This document shows, one piece after another, positions 6,422 through 54,155 of a DNA stretch of 64,000 nucleotides. The position numbers and the translations under genes were made by a program. The DNA comes from Pelomyxa schiedti (Eukaryota > Protista > Evosea). The stretch's first letter is position 1; each line of letters starts with the position of its first letter. The notes below the pieces were generated by a model that made no database searches, had not been told where the DNA came from, and saw only the letters and a program-made list of their open reading frames with translations. The stretch is from the NCBI GenBank assembly GCA_020536535.1, contig JAHLWZ010000734.1, positions 4,016-68,015 of the forward strand, in the 5' to 3' direction.

Positions 6422-7272
6422 ATGAAGATTTGTGCGTTTGTGACACTGGCGTGCACGCTGGCGTTTTGTGCCGGCTCCATAAGTACGGCACCTCTTCAAA
6501 ACAATATTTGATCAACTTCATTGTTTACTTTGATTTTTTTTTTTTTTTGCCCTGTGACCTTACCCTTTGCTTTCCAAAGTTTGCGTAATTTACAGTGTAT
6601 CTCCTGATACCGTGTGGTACAAGTACACTACGTTGGGAGGTAATTTCATTCTGACTTTTTTTTTTTTCCTTTTGCCGCACTGATTGACCGGAACGCAGTT
6701 GACACCGAGGAAACTTGGGATACTGTTACTGAGAACGATGGCGATCCTATGGCGGAACTGTACAAAATAGTTTGGGGGCTGACAATTTCTGGGGCAGGTG
6801 TGGGCCTGTTGGGCACTTGTATGTGCACTATTATGTTATTCCGAGTCTGTTGTAGCAAGAAGTCTGGAAATCCCGTAATGAAGTATGTGTTAGAATTTGT
6901 CCCACAGGCGTACTGAAACTTTTCTTTTTCTTTTCACCAAGAGCAATAGCTATAACACTTTCCTCTTTGTCATTGCTTACCTGCATTATTGGTTCGCTAT
7001 ACTTCCTGAGGCACCCCTACTACTACGATAAATACGTACTGTGCGACCTTGTTGGCGATACTACCAGTGCATGCTCGGATTTCAGCGGCCAGACAGAAGT
7101 TGCAGGAGTTGTTACCTCAGAATGGGGGCCAGGTAAAAACCCACAAACACACACCAAGCACTTCCCATATTTCTTACTTCAACGCACAGAGAAAGGCTGG
7201 TACGCGTCTCTTATAGGTGCTGGTTGCACTATGCTAAATGCACTGGCGATAATCGTCGCGCCCACCAAGTAA
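6422..7272 (+). CDS. Small multi-pass (about 4 TM) membrane protein, claudin/LHFPL-like topology, spliced
   Basis: Hydrophobic N-terminus MKICAFVTLACTLAFCA, further hydrophobic segments, a Cys-containing loop and a WGP..GWY motif before the last TM helix. Confidence 0.55.
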
Positions 7273-7499
7273 AAAGACCCCCAATCAACGCATCGCCAAC
7301 GAACGGAACTTCGTTTGTACTTTTCGCGGAAACAACGAACGTCCATTTGTTTCTTTTAAGGAAATTATTGAGAAAGTGGTGCACGAGAGGTGCACTATTT
7401 GTCACAATTTGCCTGCCTGTGCACCTCGTCTGCCAGCGAGGAAAAAAAAAGCGGGCCCCCAAGCAACACTTTAATTAATTAAAAAAAACAAAGGTAGTA

Positions 7500-9862
7500 A
7501 TGACGTCGGTTGTTGTGGCAGCGGTGGAGCAACCAGTTCTGGGTAAGGTGAGCAGAAGGGAGGAGATCTCCGTATCGTGCAAAGACGGAATACAGTTGAT
7601 CTCCACTGTTGACTCACTGGCTTTTGTGGGGGTTGGGGGTTGCCTGTTGGCCCTGTGGTGTCCGCAACTGTGCAAGTGCAAGTTGAAAAACTCGCGTATC
7701 CCGAATCCCTCTGATTCGCCCCGACCACCTTTATCACGATCGAACACTCCAGCCACTATCACACTCACAAGAACCCCATCGGTTTCCCCATCCCCAACAC
7801 CAACAAATACCCCACCACCTTCACCTCTCCCTTCCCGCGCTCGACGAAGTGGAAGCGAGTCATGTGAGAGTCCAGGTCTCACTGTATCTACTTCGCCATC
7901 GCTTCCTTTGTGCGATCCTCCCAGGAGTGCGCCTCTTCCAATCCCTGTTACATCGAAAATGCGTCAGTCTCAAAATATATCTTCCTCTTCTTCGTCTTCA
8001 TCTTCCTCTTACTCGAGTTCCTATTCTTCACTATCCTCTTCATATTCATCTTCGTCTTCCTCTTGTTCTCCTCCCAAAGAATTTTGCAATTCACAACCAG
8101 TTCTTCCTGCCAACACGACAGCTACTCAACACGAGGAGCAGGATAGCCCCTGTCCAACAGAACCGTCAACAACCGACCCACAAGAATCGCAACTTTCCTA
8201 TCAATGCACGTGCTCTTGCTCCTCAGTGGAGTTATTCAGGCTGCATGATACTCACGCAGCCATACGTTCACCACTAATACATTTGTGGAAAATGAATATC
8301 AAAGGTTGGTTTTCCTTACTTAGTCGCTCGGACGAAGTTTATATAAATTTAATTGTACAATGAAACAAGGCCTGTCAGGTGCTGGATTCTCTTTGGTGAA
8401 TTCTATTTACCACATGAAGTGTGTCTATGCAGGAAGTTATGGGAGCCTATTAGCACTATATCCAGATACTGGGTCAATTAAATGGCAAGTCCGCCCCAAA
8501 GGTTCCGCTAAAACAAGGCCTACTGTGCCCTTATTCTAAATGAAAAGGTTTAAGACGTTGTTCTGGAATGGACATGTGGCCTTATGAGGATTGGCTAATT
8601 CTCGGAGGCTCTGGTTGTGTTGCATGTATCTCTTGTGAAGACGGCCATGTAAATTCCTTTTTTATTATTACCTTCACACCAAATATTGCAAGGACATATG
8701 GAGCACAAGTCTGCCGGGTACATTTTTCTGGAATGTTACCCTACTAGTAAGAGATAACATAGTCTACGCGGGCACATACTGCCAAGCTTTTGCCCTGGAT
8801 ATTTTCACAGGAAAAATCCTGTGGTCACAGAGCTTCTTGAAAATTAAGATCATTGCCCCAGTACACTGTTCTTCTCTCGTTGAGTAATATTTCTAATAAC
8901 ATCCAGGTGACTTTTGGGTGGCTTTCTGTTCCTCAAAACTCCCAGTTTGAAAAATGTGAATTTTTAATTGTGGGTAGGTTCAACAACATTTTACTAGCTC
9001 GCTACTAAAATTCTGTTTTCAAGGTTGTTACGGCTACATTTACATGGTTGATCCTCAAACGGGCGAGGTTTGTAGGGAAATTTCTCTTTTTCTCTCTGAC
9101 TGAAATTTGTGACTAGGTACTCATTGAGGTTTCTCTTCCGGGGACTGGCTTTCATGTGGTGTCTTTATTAGTGAACGGCCCCACCATCTACTCAGGTATC
9201 CTGTAACTTAATTTTTAGATTACATTAACCGTACGCAGTTTGCAATGGGGTTGCTTTTGCGCACGATATGCGGGTGCAGGAAAAACTATGGGAAAATAAA
9301 CTGAAAGGTACTACCCACTCCACATTGATTGTCTGTCTACTACCCCCGAAAACAGGATTTGGAGTAGGAGAAGGTGCTTGTATTTTGGAATACACCCTGG
9401 GTTCCCACAACGACCCACCTGAAACCCCCACACATATCGCAATCGGGCTCAATGGAAAGGTTGCATCCCTTTCTGCTTTGTCAGGAGAGATCTTCTGGGT
9501 CTGTTCACTGCCCAATTGTGGATATGGCTTTGTTTCTCTCGGAATGTTGAGAGGCCTTTTGTATGCCGTCAGTTGGGGAAAGATGTATATATTAGATCCT
9601 GAAACCGGTATGGCTGTACTTCTTGAAATTCCCACTTATAACCACCACCGCCTTACAGGCAAGGTTCTTTTCCTGGAAGCCCTCACAGGAACTGGGCATG
9701 GGCCCGCAACAATTGCTTCTGCAGGAGCAAGAATGGACTCCTCTGCCTGCACTCTCTTTGCCAGGACTGATGTAAGGCTTCCCCTTCCCCATAGTACTTC
9801 TGTAGCCACTTAGTACTGTCTAGGTTACTGGACGCAACTCCACGCCTGCTGATCTCACCTAG
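7500..9862 (+). CDS. PQQ-like beta-propeller repeat protein with a long Ser/Pro-rich insertion, spliced
   Basis: Repeated blades such as YAGSYGSLLALYPDTGSIKWQ, YAGTYCQAFALDIFTGKILW, IGLNGKVASLSALSGEIFW and YAVSWGKMYILDPETG. Confidence 0.7.
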
Positions 9863-49599: not shown

Positions 49600-52519
49600 T
49601 CACACAGCTTCGTGGGCCGTGCGTGAAATGATCTCGTCTTGTAGACTCTTCCCTAGATCACAGAAATAATCGCTGTATCCCGCAACACGCACGATGAGAT
49701 CTCTGCAAGTAAAACAGCATGTGAGATTGATTGTTAGGAACAAGAAAAGGACGAGATGGAGGGGGTCACCTGTATTGTTCTGGGTGGTTCTGGGCTTGTA
49801 TCAAGGTCTCGCGGTCAACGACATTAAATTGTATGTGGTGGCCGTCTAGTTTGAAGTATGTCTTTATCAGATTAACGAGTTTATCCAGTGCTGCATCTCC
49901 TTCAAGCACCTTTGCGATATTAATTGGCAGAAAGAAAAGGTAGGTGAATAGAATAACCTTTGGAGTAAATCGCATATTCAATAGGGTCCCGCCGGTGCGA
50001 ATATGATCCATTTTTGCAACAGATTTCAGAACCGCTGTCGGTCCGTTACGATCTGCACCTTGAACAGGAGATACCCCTTCTGATAATGGGAGTCCAGCCT
50101 TTCTACCATCTGCACTTGCCAGTGTCACCGAGCTACATCTTTAAGCAACCAGAAAAAAGAGAAGTCAAACATACCCAAAATAGACATGGCAAGTTGTTGG
50201 GAGCATCATTACGTGGTACCAACCACCCTTAGTATTTGGTCGGCCCTCTACGCATTGTACAAATGACTCAAACACCTGGCACATGATGGAATCCGCTTCA
50301 TCATTATCATTTCCATATTTCGGAGTATGGTTCTGAAGCATCAATCTTATTCGCTCCCCACCAAGGCCACTGAAATTACTTTTTAATGCGGCACTTAATT
50401 GGGCTGCTGAAATTTGACTTGCAGTTGAATCATGTTGGAAAAGGAGATGATTTAATGCAGATAGGCAATCGGTAATAGTTCCTATTCCTACACCCTGAAT
50501 GTAGGTGTTGTTGTACCGAGCTCCTCCACTGTTGTAGTCTTTAGCTTTTTTAATACAATCAGAGACCAGAATCGATAAAAATGGAGCTGGCATATTTTCT
50601 GCATATAGTCGTTCAATTACATTATTTCCTCGAACCTGGTTCATTTGTTAACAACTTGAAATGGTGGAAAACATACCTTGATATCAACGAAATGTTTCAA
50701 CTGTGTCCGAAATGAAGACAGAATATCGGCAAACGAATGGAAACTCTCAAGTGTTACTCCTGTGGGAACTCCAATCATGTTTCCGGTGCGGGCATCCAAG
50801 CCCCCATTAAGTGCAATTTCCAGTATTTTCGGCAGGTTGAGGTATCCTGTGAGGTTGCAGTTTTCCTTTCCATAACATGACACCTCCACACATCCACTTG
50901 AGCCACCTTCCCTAGCATCGGCTAGAGAAGCACCGTTTCTCACGAGTTCCTGTACTATTGCATCGGTATTGAACATAGAGGGCTGGCCAAAACCAGTCCG
51001 AGAAATTCTTGCTGCATGCTTTAATAAGGAATCAGGGCTCCGCTTGCTTACTTGGACTGAAGCACTTGGTTGAAGAAGTCTCATTTGTTCAACTACGTCG
51101 AGTATTGCATGGGTTGCTGGTGTTGTGGCATCAGAGCCATCGTTGTGCAAACCCCCAACACCAATTTGGGCAAAATCTGTATATGTCATACTCTCTGCAG
51201 CTGTTACACCGGTTTTTGGGGGTGCTGGTTGATTGTTGAATTTGATCCAAAAGCATTGCAACAATTCACGTGCTCCTGTTTCTCCCATTTCCTCGGACGA
51301 ACAGGCTTCAGTCCACCATCCAGCAATATGTTGATCCAAATGCCCAGGGGAGAAAGAATCCCACGTATTCAACTCGGTCGTAACTCCAAGATGGCAAAAC
51401 CAATACATTTGCAGAGCTTCCCACAAATTACTAGGCGCGTGTGCTGGTACCTTCCGGCATATAGTAGCTATCTTCTCTAGTTCACCTTTTCTCCTAACCT
51501 GTTCAGGTGTTCCACTGACAGGTATGGCCTCTGCCATCTCAAGAGCTCGTTGTGAATAGCGAGTCGAGAGCGTAATGAGAGACGTTGCACAAATTCGCAT
51601 TGCGTGTAGTTGTTCTGATTTACTATGTGCCATAGGGTCGTTCAACCAATCAAGTAAAGAAAGCTGAAGGTCGATTTCTTCAATAAAGTTAAGCATTCCT
51701 TTGTGATAAATCTTATTATCTAGAACACAATGTCCAGGTGCTCTCTATGGCACAATGGTAGGTTGAGAGGAAAAAATTGAAGGTGCACCTGTTCCATGAA
51801 TTCCGTGAAGATCCCAGCCTTGTATGCCTGGATCCAATCGGGAGTCATCTTGGAGAAGATTACCTCACGTATGCTGCGCCCTGTCCAAAATGGAATAACT
51901 TTTTCTGCAAAAACCTATCCTGCTCAATGAGCCAAACGATGCGAATCACTCAGAACAGACCTGTCTTGTTTCAGTGGTTACATGAAATGGAACCTTTTCT
52001 CTTGAATTGAGGCAGTCGAGGTCTTCCAACGAATGGCAACACAACTCAGGATAAGTTGGGCAGTGCTTAGGGGCCGGACCCTTCTCTCCAACTATGAGCT
52101 CATCTTCCCCAATGTAAATTGTGCAATGAGAACATAGATACTGGAACAACAGTGCCCGGATTCTTACAGGGCTCGTTGTTACCAATGAACAAAATTCCTT
52201 TTTAGTTAAAACAGAGGTTACTGGAGCCACACCGGAAAGAAACAAATCCAAAACAACACTCAAGTAAAAAAAAAAAAAAAAAAAAACAAAAAACAGAAAA
52301 GTTGAAACAACAAACTGAGACACAAGAATCTGCCAACGGTTGAGTAGAGCAGCCCACGTAAAAATCAGTTACGAGGGACGCCCTCTCACAGGACAGAGCC
52401 TCACGTGCCCTCACACTTCCTTCACGTAGCCTCCTCACCCTCTCCGTCGCCATCATCCCATAAGTGGAAGTAGCTGCTGCTGTGCCCACGTCCGTTGCAC
52501 CGCAGCACGAAGTAGTCAT
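49600..52519 (-). CDS. hypD: Glycyl radical enzyme, trans-4-hydroxy-L-proline dehydratase (HypD)-like; 7 introns, about 823 aa
   Basis: [60 protein letters not shown] (Cys at 50890-50892), LTGYLN, MLPTTCH, RVAGYS (Gly at 49678-49680). Introns at 49703-49769, 49910-49957, 50133-50174, 50636-50676, 51745-51788, 51915-51960 and about 52198-52357 give an in-frame product. Confidence 0.9.
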
Positions 52520-52594
52520 TTACTTCCCGTTGCGCTTTCTTGAAGTTGTCACAGACTTCGCAGAAAAAGGGGATTGATGCTTTGTTGATAGCGA
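52520..52594. promoter_or_regulatory. 75-bp ATG-to-ATG interval, probable bidirectional promoter with a central dyad
   Basis: TTTCT-T-GAAGT-N8-ACTTC-GC-AGAAA at 52536-52566, between the divergent start codons. Confidence 0.55.
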
Positions 52595-53759
52595 ATGAGA
52601 ACTTCGTCTTGTGCTGATGCGGGTGCACGCGGAATGTTGTTTGATGTGAGGCGGTTCTCGGTGAATGACGGTCCGGGTATCAGGACAACTGTGTTCTTCA
52701 AAGGGTGTCCTTTGTCCTGCCTTTGGTGTCACAACCCTGAGAGTCAGGTGTGCTTTTTTACTACTACACGTAAACTTGTAGGCTACGTTATACTAATAGG
52801 TTGCGGCATGCAACTTCGCTTGCCTTAACTTGGTGGTATTTTTTGCCAGTCATATGCCCAGGAAGTAATGTTCCATGAAAACCGTTGTATTAAATGTGGA
52901 GCTTGCGCGGAGGCATGCACAAGTGGAGCCATCAAAAGAACTTGTGTGGATGATTCCACCTCTGTAGTAACGGTAGACCAGTCTCTGTGCACGTCGTGTG
53001 GGCGGTGTGTACCCCTCTGTGTAGCGGACGCCAGACTTCTTGTTGGGAGAGAGTACACTGCCAGCCAAGTCATGCAAATAATAGCTCGTGACATGGAATT
53101 CTATGAGGAATCTGGGGGAGGCGTAACGGTAATTCATCACCTCTCTTATCCTTAATTGAAATCATACACACAAAAAAATTGGTCAGTTCTCTGGTGGGGA
53201 ACCGCTCTCACAACCAAAGCTTCTCAAGGAGCTTCTTCAACTATGCAAATCAGCAGGAATTCACACAGCCGTGGACACCTGTGGGCAAGCAGCCTGGTCA
53301 GTGTTCAGTGAGATATTCCCCCTGGTCGACTTGTGGCTCTACGATATCAAAGCAGCATCCCCGTCCACACACAAGCATATCACAGGCAAGGATAACAGTC
53401 TGCCAATCTCCAATCTCCGGCAGATCACCTCACTGGGTGCCACTGTGATCATCCGCGCTCCAATTGTTCCTACTCTCAATGACTCACTGGAGGACATTGA
53501 AGGGTTGTGTGGAATTCTTGTGGGACTGTGTGCCATTCAGCATACTGCAGTGATAGGTGATTCTAATGGAGTACAGCACCCCACTGCCCAGGAAACACTG
53601 TCCCTCGAAGTAATGGGGTATCACAGCATTGGAAACCATAAGTATGCAGCTTTGGGCCGTAAGTACCAACTTGCTGCCCTTATGAGTTTATCACAAGAGC
53701 ACAGCGCTACAATTCAAGCCCACATAAGGCAACGTGTTCCCAACATCAAATTACTATAA
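52595..53759 (+). CDS. Glycyl-radical enzyme activating enzyme (radical SAM with a 2x[4Fe-4S] ferredoxin insert); 2 introns, about 334 aa
   Basis: [81 protein letters not shown]. Introns at 52748-52849 and 53129-53186. Confidence 0.95.
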
Positions 53760-53994
53760 AACAAAAGAGAAAGATCATACACAACATAGATAAACATTGG
53801 GACTCACACTTTTTGGCATAAACGGGGCAGAAAAGGTACTGGTTCTCTGTACCCTGTGAAGGGAAAATGCTGAAATGTCTGGACCACATCTGGACCATTC
53901 TACCGTTTCGTGGTCGTTCCAGGCTCCTAGGAGCATGACATTCCAATAGAACCTAATACCCAAAATATTCAAAGTGCGAGTACCAAACTTTGCC

Positions 53995-54155
53995 ACGCAG
54001 GGGTTAATGCTAGGAAACCCGTTTCCATTGAGGAGGTTAGAGTAAGCTTCTGCCGGCGCACTAGTGGCGGAGTTGTGTTGAGCGTTTGTTCCGCGACCCA
54101 CAGGGTGCGAGATCGAATCCGGGGCTTACGGCCCCACCGACAGTTCTTTTTGTTT
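53995..54155 (+). ncRNA. Candidate structured Pol III-type RNA or tRNA-derived element
   Basis: A-box-like TGGCGGAGTTG (54065-54075), B-box GATCGAATC (54111-54119), several GC hairpins, terminal GGGGC-TTACG-GCCCC hairpin followed by T runs. Confidence 0.3.

Follow-up and report, generated by a model that had tools for sequence, protein, structure and literature searches.

A putative trans-4-hydroxy-L-proline dehydratase and its activase, encoded head-to-head in the nuclear genome of Pelomyxa schiedti

Introduction

Hydroxyproline is abundant in the proteins of plants, algae and animals, and its trans-4 isomer is converted to Δ1-pyrroline-5-carboxylate (P5C) in anaerobic prokaryotes by HypD, an oxygen-sensitive glycyl radical enzyme (GRE). 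HypD has been described from bacteria and archaea only (PMC6219649), and a 2026 review of GREs mentions no eukaryotic eliminase. In this study we analyzed a stretch of 64,000 nucleotides (the window) of the anaerobic protist Pelomyxa schiedti (assembly GCA_020536535.1, contig JAHLWZ010000734.1, positions 4,016 to 68,015). It contains two divergent genes, for a GRE and for a radical S-adenosylmethionine (SAM) activase, which an initial annotation had read from the letters as an intron-containing HypD and its activase. No published report of a eukaryotic HypD was found in a literature search outside of which most subscription papers lie.

The closest described systems are the HypD and HypD-AE (activase) pairs of Clostridioides difficile and of further anaerobic prokaryotes, both bacteria and archaea (NF043068, NF043069; PDB 6VXC/6VXE). 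The Pelomyxa GRE is colinear with these HypDs over the full length and has all 13 of their active-site residues, its activase is of the same long type with two additional ferredoxin motifs, and the two genes are likewise linked. In contrast to the prokaryotic pairs the Pelomyxa pair is nuclear, carries nine introns, is divergent instead of tandem, has short N-terminal extensions on both proteins and has no adjacent proC.

Protists of this kind have often gained anaerobic enzymes laterally. A p-cresol-producing enzyme of lateral origin was reportedly described from the Archamoeba Mastigamoeba balamuthi by Nyvltova et al. in 2017. We take it to be 4-hydroxyphenylacetate decarboxylase, hence glycyl radical chemistry other than that of pyruvate formate-lyase (PFL), and presumably enzyme and activase form a single fusion protein there, unlike the two separate genes of Pelomyxa. 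The p-cresol-producing enzymes of M. balamuthi are cited in two papers (PMC8136499, PMC7762791). The case is alike in that a bacterial non-PFL GRE was gained by a free-living Archamoeba, but it concerns a decarboxylase and not a C-O eliminase; a similar enzyme mis-called 'PFL' is known in Trepomonas. With this precedent, a non-PFL GRE in an Archamoeba is less surprising. M. balamuthi also gained laterally a head-to-head pair of glutamate 5-kinase and glutamate-5-semialdehyde dehydrogenase genes (PMC8136499). Like the pair described here, it is a bacterial two-gene module acquired en bloc which feeds P5C and proline. The enzymes are unrelated, however, and make P5C from glutamate at the cost of ATP and NADPH, not from dietary hydroxyproline.

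Results and Discussion

Identification of the glycyl radical enzyme and its activase

Database searches were run exon by exon and trees were calculated on single exons; the exons were joined by coordinates for a frame check only. For all eight exons of the GRE gene the top NCBIfam family was NF043068 (HypD), with matches that jointly span positions 1-783 of the 784 of the profile and with scores that sum to 1019 bits. An Anaerolinea HypD cut in the same way scored 1274 bits as a whole and 1141 bits in pieces, a loss of 132. Calibrated by this loss, the whole Pelomyxa protein is estimated at ~1150 bits, compared with the curated cut-off of 1100. The best PDB match of exon 4 was C. difficile HypD (6VXC, 350 bits; next match 160 bits). 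CutC, glycerol/propanediol dehydratase, HpfG/HpsG, indoleacetate decarboxylase (IAD) and hydroxyphenylacetate decarboxylase (HPAD) were rejected with 99-184 bits on exon 4 versus 465 bits for HypD. PFL (TIGR01255) was rejected as well, since the Cys loop has a single Cys and not Cys-Cys and the profile gave only 15-21 bits, on exons 6-8.

The locus matches both GRE domains, PF02901 and PF01228, and shows the RVAG motif at aa 795-798 and the eliminase-type CxE loop (GCVE, aa 459-462). All 13 published active-site residues of HypD (PMC7077986; Phe152 from PMC6219649), mapped through a gap-free alignment of Anaerolinea HypD with 6VXC, are identical in the Pelomyxa GRE. They comprise the acid-base network (His160, Asp278, Asp339, Glu436), the carboxylate ligands (Ser334, Tyr450, Thr645) as well as Phe152, Phe340, Arg156, Lys326, Cys434 and Gly765; the same set occurs in 179 of 199 bacterial HypD loci. 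In the tree of exon 4 (94 rows) the GRE is nested in the HypD clade with a support of 99/98, and in the exon 5 tree it lies within HypD with 94/80. The HypD identity proposed in the initial annotation, together with the motifs it had named and the placement among GREs it had suggested to check, is therefore borne out.

The activase carries the radical-SAM motif CxxxCxxC (aa 38-45), two ferredoxin-type Cys motifs (aa 64-74 and 98-108) and SGGEP. It is 50-53% identical to bacterial activases adjacent to hypD, versus 26-42% for activases of other GREs, and exceeds the cut-off of the broader family TIGR02494 (317 versus 174 bits). The cognate activase is thus the divergent neighbour of the GRE, being nearest to the hypD-linked activases.

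Judged by these residues, the Pelomyxa GRE would dehydrate trans-4-hydroxy-L-proline to P5C. It is unlikely that a HypD-derived enzyme has shifted to another substrate, such as a different hydroxyproline isomer or an N-methylated or glycosylated form, or has become promiscuous. Such a shift would fit the long terminal branch of the protein, the use of other hydroxyproline isomers by the related GREs HpyG, HpzG and HplG (PMC13450708), and the presence of a HypD-related GRE with an altered pocket (P0046) in the same genome. However, the substrate-binding and catalytic residues match those of C. difficile HypD without exception, and HpyG, HpzG and HplG reach only 132, 132 and 84 bits versus 350 for HypD.

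Structure of the gene pair

The GRE gene runs on the minus strand from 52519 to 49600 and has 8 exons with 823 codons and no internal stop; its seven introns of 41-160 bp are all bounded by GT and AG. The activase gene, on the plus strand from 52595 to 53759, has 3 exons with 334 codons and two GT-AG introns. The first ATGs of the divergent genes are 75 bp apart, and the pair lies amid eukaryotic genes. Homology begins at Met22/23 of the GRE and at Met14 of the activase; if these were the true starts, the gap would be ~177 bp. Intron numbers and start distance are as initially annotated and were reproduced by the frame check. The features are as follows (window coordinates).

49600-52519, minus strand: HypD-type GRE gene, 823 codons, or 802 from Met22 (52456); NF043068 best per exon
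52358-52519, minus strand: GRE exon 1, 21-aa extension and HypD N-terminus; NF043068 profile 1-30
52198-52357, minus strand: GRE intron 1, 160 bp, poly-T tract inside; no RNA cover
51961-52197, minus strand: GRE exon 2; frame check and NF043068 match
51915-51960, minus strand: GRE intron 2, 46 bp; spliced, RNA run X4
51789-51914, minus strand: GRE exon 3; Phe152 equivalent at 51800-51798
51745-51788, minus strand: GRE intron 3, 44 bp; set by frame and homology only
50677-51744, minus strand: GRE exon 4; equivalents of Arg156, His160, Asp278, Lys326, Ser334, Asp339, Phe340, Cys434 (50892-50890), Glu436 and Tyr450
50636-50676, minus strand: GRE intron 4, 41 bp; set by frame and homology only
50175-50635, minus strand: GRE exon 5; Thr645 equivalent at 50197-50195
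50133-50174, minus strand: GRE intron 5, 42 bp, carries an in-frame stop; spliced, RNA run X3
49958-50132, minus strand: GRE exon 6; RNA and NF043068 match
49910-49957, minus strand: GRE intron 6, 48 bp, frame-preserving and stop-free; spliced, RNA run X3
49770-49909, minus strand: GRE exon 7; RNA and NF043068 match
49703-49769, minus strand: GRE intron 7, 67 bp; spliced, RNA run X3
49600-49702, minus strand: GRE exon 8; glycyl-radical Gly (49680-49678) and stop
52520-52594, no strand: 75-bp spacer, flanked by the first ATGs of the divergent genes; presumably a promoter for both
52498-52616, no strand: imperfect 23-nt inverted repeat formed by the two start regions (arms 52498-52520 and 52594-52616), in register on the ATGs
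52595-53759, plus strand: activase gene, exons 52595-52747, 52850-53128 and 53187-53759; NCBI record KAH3758805.1
52748-52849, plus strand: activase intron 1, 102 bp; spliced, RNA run X3
53129-53186, plus strand: activase intron 2, 58 bp; spliced, RNA runs X3 and X4

For GRE intron 1 in-frame alternatives exist, and its boundaries were picked by homology and by agreement in length with bacterial HypD. The activase as modelled by NCBI (308 aa) departs from the genomic frame after residue 301 (window 53658-53759). Since the RNA contigs are unspliced there and the homologues extend further, the frame of 334 aa is to be preferred.

Origin and selection

The genomes closest on exon 4 are Anaerolineae and other sediment anaerobes with 56-63% identity. 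The closest sequences are the HypDs of Anaerolinea thermolimosa and related Anaerolineae (L026, L029, L046) with 63.8% identity exon-wise, and no relative closer than ~64% occurs among the genome and metagenome matches. With the LG model, exon 4 is sister to the A. thermolimosa group (100/94). With a mixture model it lies inside a Chloroflexota-dominated clade of 22 rows (100/98), the exact position within the clade not being fixed. Gut-type HypDs of Bacillota and Bacteroidota branch more distantly. A Bacillota placement, of which exon 5 gave a weak hint, was rejected for exon 4 (p-AU 0.028, for a group chosen after the tree had been seen). These trees and matches, together with the codon and silent-site data below, uphold the bacterial origin that had been proposed for the pair. 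The A. thermolimosa locus itself is no model of the donor locus, because its activase does not adjoin hypD; in this genome the best activase candidate is ~650 kb off. In the published endosymbiont tables, neither HypD nor a glycyl term is found among the entries listed.

The GC content at third codon positions (GC3) is 0.40 and 0.49 in the gene pair (GRE 0.40), compared with 0.45 in the host and 0.70 in Anaerolinea, so codon use is host-like. Fourfold sites are identical to the bacterium at 16 of 75 positions, which is chance level (saturated). Host-like codon use and saturated silent sites indicate that the transfer is old, and since 64% of the residues and all catalytic ones were kept meanwhile, the sequences point to long purifying selection. 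It is therefore very unlikely that the pair is a real but decaying or idle acquisition, transcribed yet left unactivated or without flux. In favour of decay one may count that the GRE evolves faster than its bacterial orthologues, that its cover by RNA contigs is low and patchy, and that glycyl radicals are destroyed at the oxic-anoxic borders which Pelomyxa inhabits. Both frames, however, are intact, two silent polymorphisms in the contigs both fall on third codon positions, and contig depth is unfit to rank expression.

Splicing and nuclear location

Six of the nine introns (GRE introns 2, 5, 6 and 7 and both activase introns) are skipped by RNA contigs at the exact boundaries, which for these six answers the RNA check suggested with the initial annotation. 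One DNA contig of 22.5 kb (run X2) links the start of a DEAH helicase gene with GRE exons 2-8, and a second one holds GRE exon 1 and the activase. The break between them is a poly-A tract (52256-52302) inside GRE intron 1, which was skipped in the contig search. A bacterial contaminant, endosymbiont DNA or a chimeric assembly can be dismissed almost completely: the assembly stems from a single cell full of prokaryotes, the nearest relatives are all bacterial and the Logan contigs split inside intron 1, but nine spliceosomal introns, spliced RNA, the contig tying the GRE to the helicase, host-like codon use and the lack of any genome or metagenome match above ~64% refute it in substance. The claim of a eukaryotic nuclear location stands on the splicing and on the eukaryotic domains of the neighbours.

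Taken together, we hold with considerable confidence that the pair encodes a functional HypD and its cognate activase, an old acquisition from an environmental anaerobic bacterium, most likely of an Anaerolineae-dominated HypD subclade, domesticated in the Pelomyxa nucleus. Several observations weigh against this assessment. The branch of the GRE is long (0.66-1.11, versus a median of 0.19-0.26), and its specificity might have drifted. The activase reaches 310 bits on NF043069 (for the NCBI model with its wrong C-terminus), where the cut-off is 425; hypD-adjacent activases of Anaerolineae likewise stay below it with 379-400 bits. The donor is resolved neither by the activase tree nor by that of exon 5, which does not confirm the Anaerolineae as sister group. 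GRE introns 1, 3 and 4 have no RNA cover, 3 and 4 being set by frame and homology. The DNA and RNA runs belong to one study, probably including the source of the assembly, and are not independent of it, yet the splicing itself excludes a prokaryotic source. Finally, ornithine aminotransferase, another source of P5C, is unnamed in the published enzyme list, and the genome was not searched for it.

The pair represents a known enzyme in what would be a new domain of life; that it is the first eukaryotic HypD is unproven. No other eukaryotic orthologue appeared in the exon-4 search, a weak negative as it covered proteins of 196-623 aa only, and a profile anchored on the Anaerolinea HypD returned only bacterial kin among its top 120 matches. 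The Atlas search gave generic bacterial PFL-like clusters only.

Head-to-head arrangement

In bacteria the activase gene lies upstream of hypD in the same orientation, mostly no more than a few bases away. This order was found in 60 of 60 nearest loci for which an activase fell within the region viewed, including six whose overlapping ORF starts mimic a downstream position, and in 36 of 39 loci of Bacillota and Bacteroidota. As the bacterial loci are tandem, the head-to-head arrangement is derived, with the activase inverted. Of the earlier statement that the genes were kept linked, the linkage holds, whereas the layout is not the bacterial one. Because a tandem bacterial operon could not be translated as one eukaryotic mRNA, the activase may have been flipped so that both genes came under one short two-way promoter, and two monocistronic mRNAs would then start from the same spacer.

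Downstream of the ATG, 13 of 19 bases agree between the two start regions (codon-shuffle P=0.002), and both proteins start with a similar stretch of 7 residues which is absent from bacteria. This supports the upstream ATGs and could mean that one start region was duplicated in inverted orientation or that the two proteins share an N-terminal signal. The likeness is a lead only, since Ser/Thr-rich N-termini may be common in P. schiedti. The spacer as a whole forms no unusual palindrome (P=0.03-0.08, with many window tiles scoring equally high), and a scan for bacterial promoters stayed at chance level.

Proposed pathway

Following the chemistry of HypD (PMC7077986), the activase would cleave SAM and set a radical on the C-terminal Gly, which would pass to the Cys of the CxE loop; this Cys would remove the C5 hydrogen of hydroxyproline, and C4 would lose water to give P5C. 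The hydroxyproline might come from wall glycoproteins of digested plants or algae or from animal detritus. P5C could be turned into proline by P5C reductase (P5CR) with NAD(P)H, which would provide proline as well as a sink for NAD(P)H, or into glutamate by P5C dehydrogenase. Both enzymes are present in the P. schiedti genome, where the published P5CR sequence is found at the start of the proC locus, and both are listed for Pelomyxa (PMC8887013, PMC10579272); the search for the reductase had been suggested with the initial annotation. In the draft genome no match for proline dehydrogenase was found, which is also missing from the published table (PMC8887013 Table S2), and for glutamate 5-kinase (proB) there was only a fragment with E=3e-4 and no clear gene. 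As the P5C enzymes are present and these two were not found, HypD may be the source of P5C for both of them, although absence from a draft genome is no proof. P5CR bears a peroxisomal signal (PMC8887013). Neither the GRE nor the activase ends in a C-terminal peroxisomal tripeptide (PTS1), so both are probably cytosolic.

A working HypD in a protist would extend anaerobic hydroxyproline breakdown to eukaryotes of anoxic sediments and supply a source for the two P5C enzymes, for which the Pelomyxa genome papers give no upstream step. It would also be a clean case of how an obligate bacterial two-gene module persists after transfer into a genome with monocistronic genes. The chemistry as such is known already.

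Other glycyl radical enzymes in the genome

Besides HypD, the P. schiedti genome contains three further GRE loci, on contigs C644, C127 and C822. The first (C644:49800-53400) encodes an activase-GRE fusion of 1025 aa (KAH3759939.1), which branches as the sister of the HypD clade and has changes at several substrate-binding residues. The second (C127:25200-29200) is an IAD/HPAD-like GRE followed by an activase domain on the same strand. The third (C822, ~7200-9300, minus strand) is a divergent, intron-rich GRE-like locus in which neither a Gly-radical domain nor, nearby, an activase was matched. A weak GRE-activase-like match (E ~1e-5 to 1e-6) was seen at C828:24050-24470, a contig without a GRE match; its product might belong with the C822 enzyme or with an anaerobic ribonucleotide reductase.

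A true PFL was not found in the genome with TIGR01255 or E. coli PflB, which agrees with two papers (PMC8887013, PMC10711303). At odds with this, the Dataset of PMC10579272 lists two 'PFL' genes (Pelo_1539, Pelo_11677), which may be non-PFL GREs; in this case, formate production by PFL drops out of the map. There is next to no chance that the GRE described here is the PFL of that published metabolic map, even though automatic pipelines label HypDs 'formate C-acetyltransferase', given its single-Cys GCVE loop, the TIGR01255 scores and the listed accessions (KAH3766596.1, KAH3756486.1), which are far from the activase record KAH3758805.1.

A more comprehensive scenario is conceivable but rather doubtful. 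The pair would be the first eukaryotic HypD and the main or only source of P5C, allowing proline formation and reoxidation of some NAD(P)H without hydrogen from the hydroxyproline of engulfed plant and algal debris. It would be one of four non-PFL GREs in a genome without a true PFL, and the conversion of the bacterial operon would have involved one inversion around a duplicated start region and, in two other cases, a gene fusion. If true, the metabolic map published for the amoeba-methanogen consortium would have to be revised.

Genomic neighbourhood

No tRNA or Rfam RNA lies near the module. Right after the activase, at 53800-54070, there is a short multicopy element (contig depth ~550 versus 45, loose ends at 54009) without a tRNA or Rfam match. 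Of the two flanking genes named in the initial annotation, the DEAH helicase on the left is confirmed (HA2_C, E=2e-12; candidate ATG 49458), whereas the spliced receptor on the right is plausible with a weak match to an ephrin-receptor-like repeat (E=8e-4). The rest of the window is eukaryotic as well, with helicase and Ras-family domains and, recognized by eye, Hsp100-, ubiquitin protease- and exportin-like frames.

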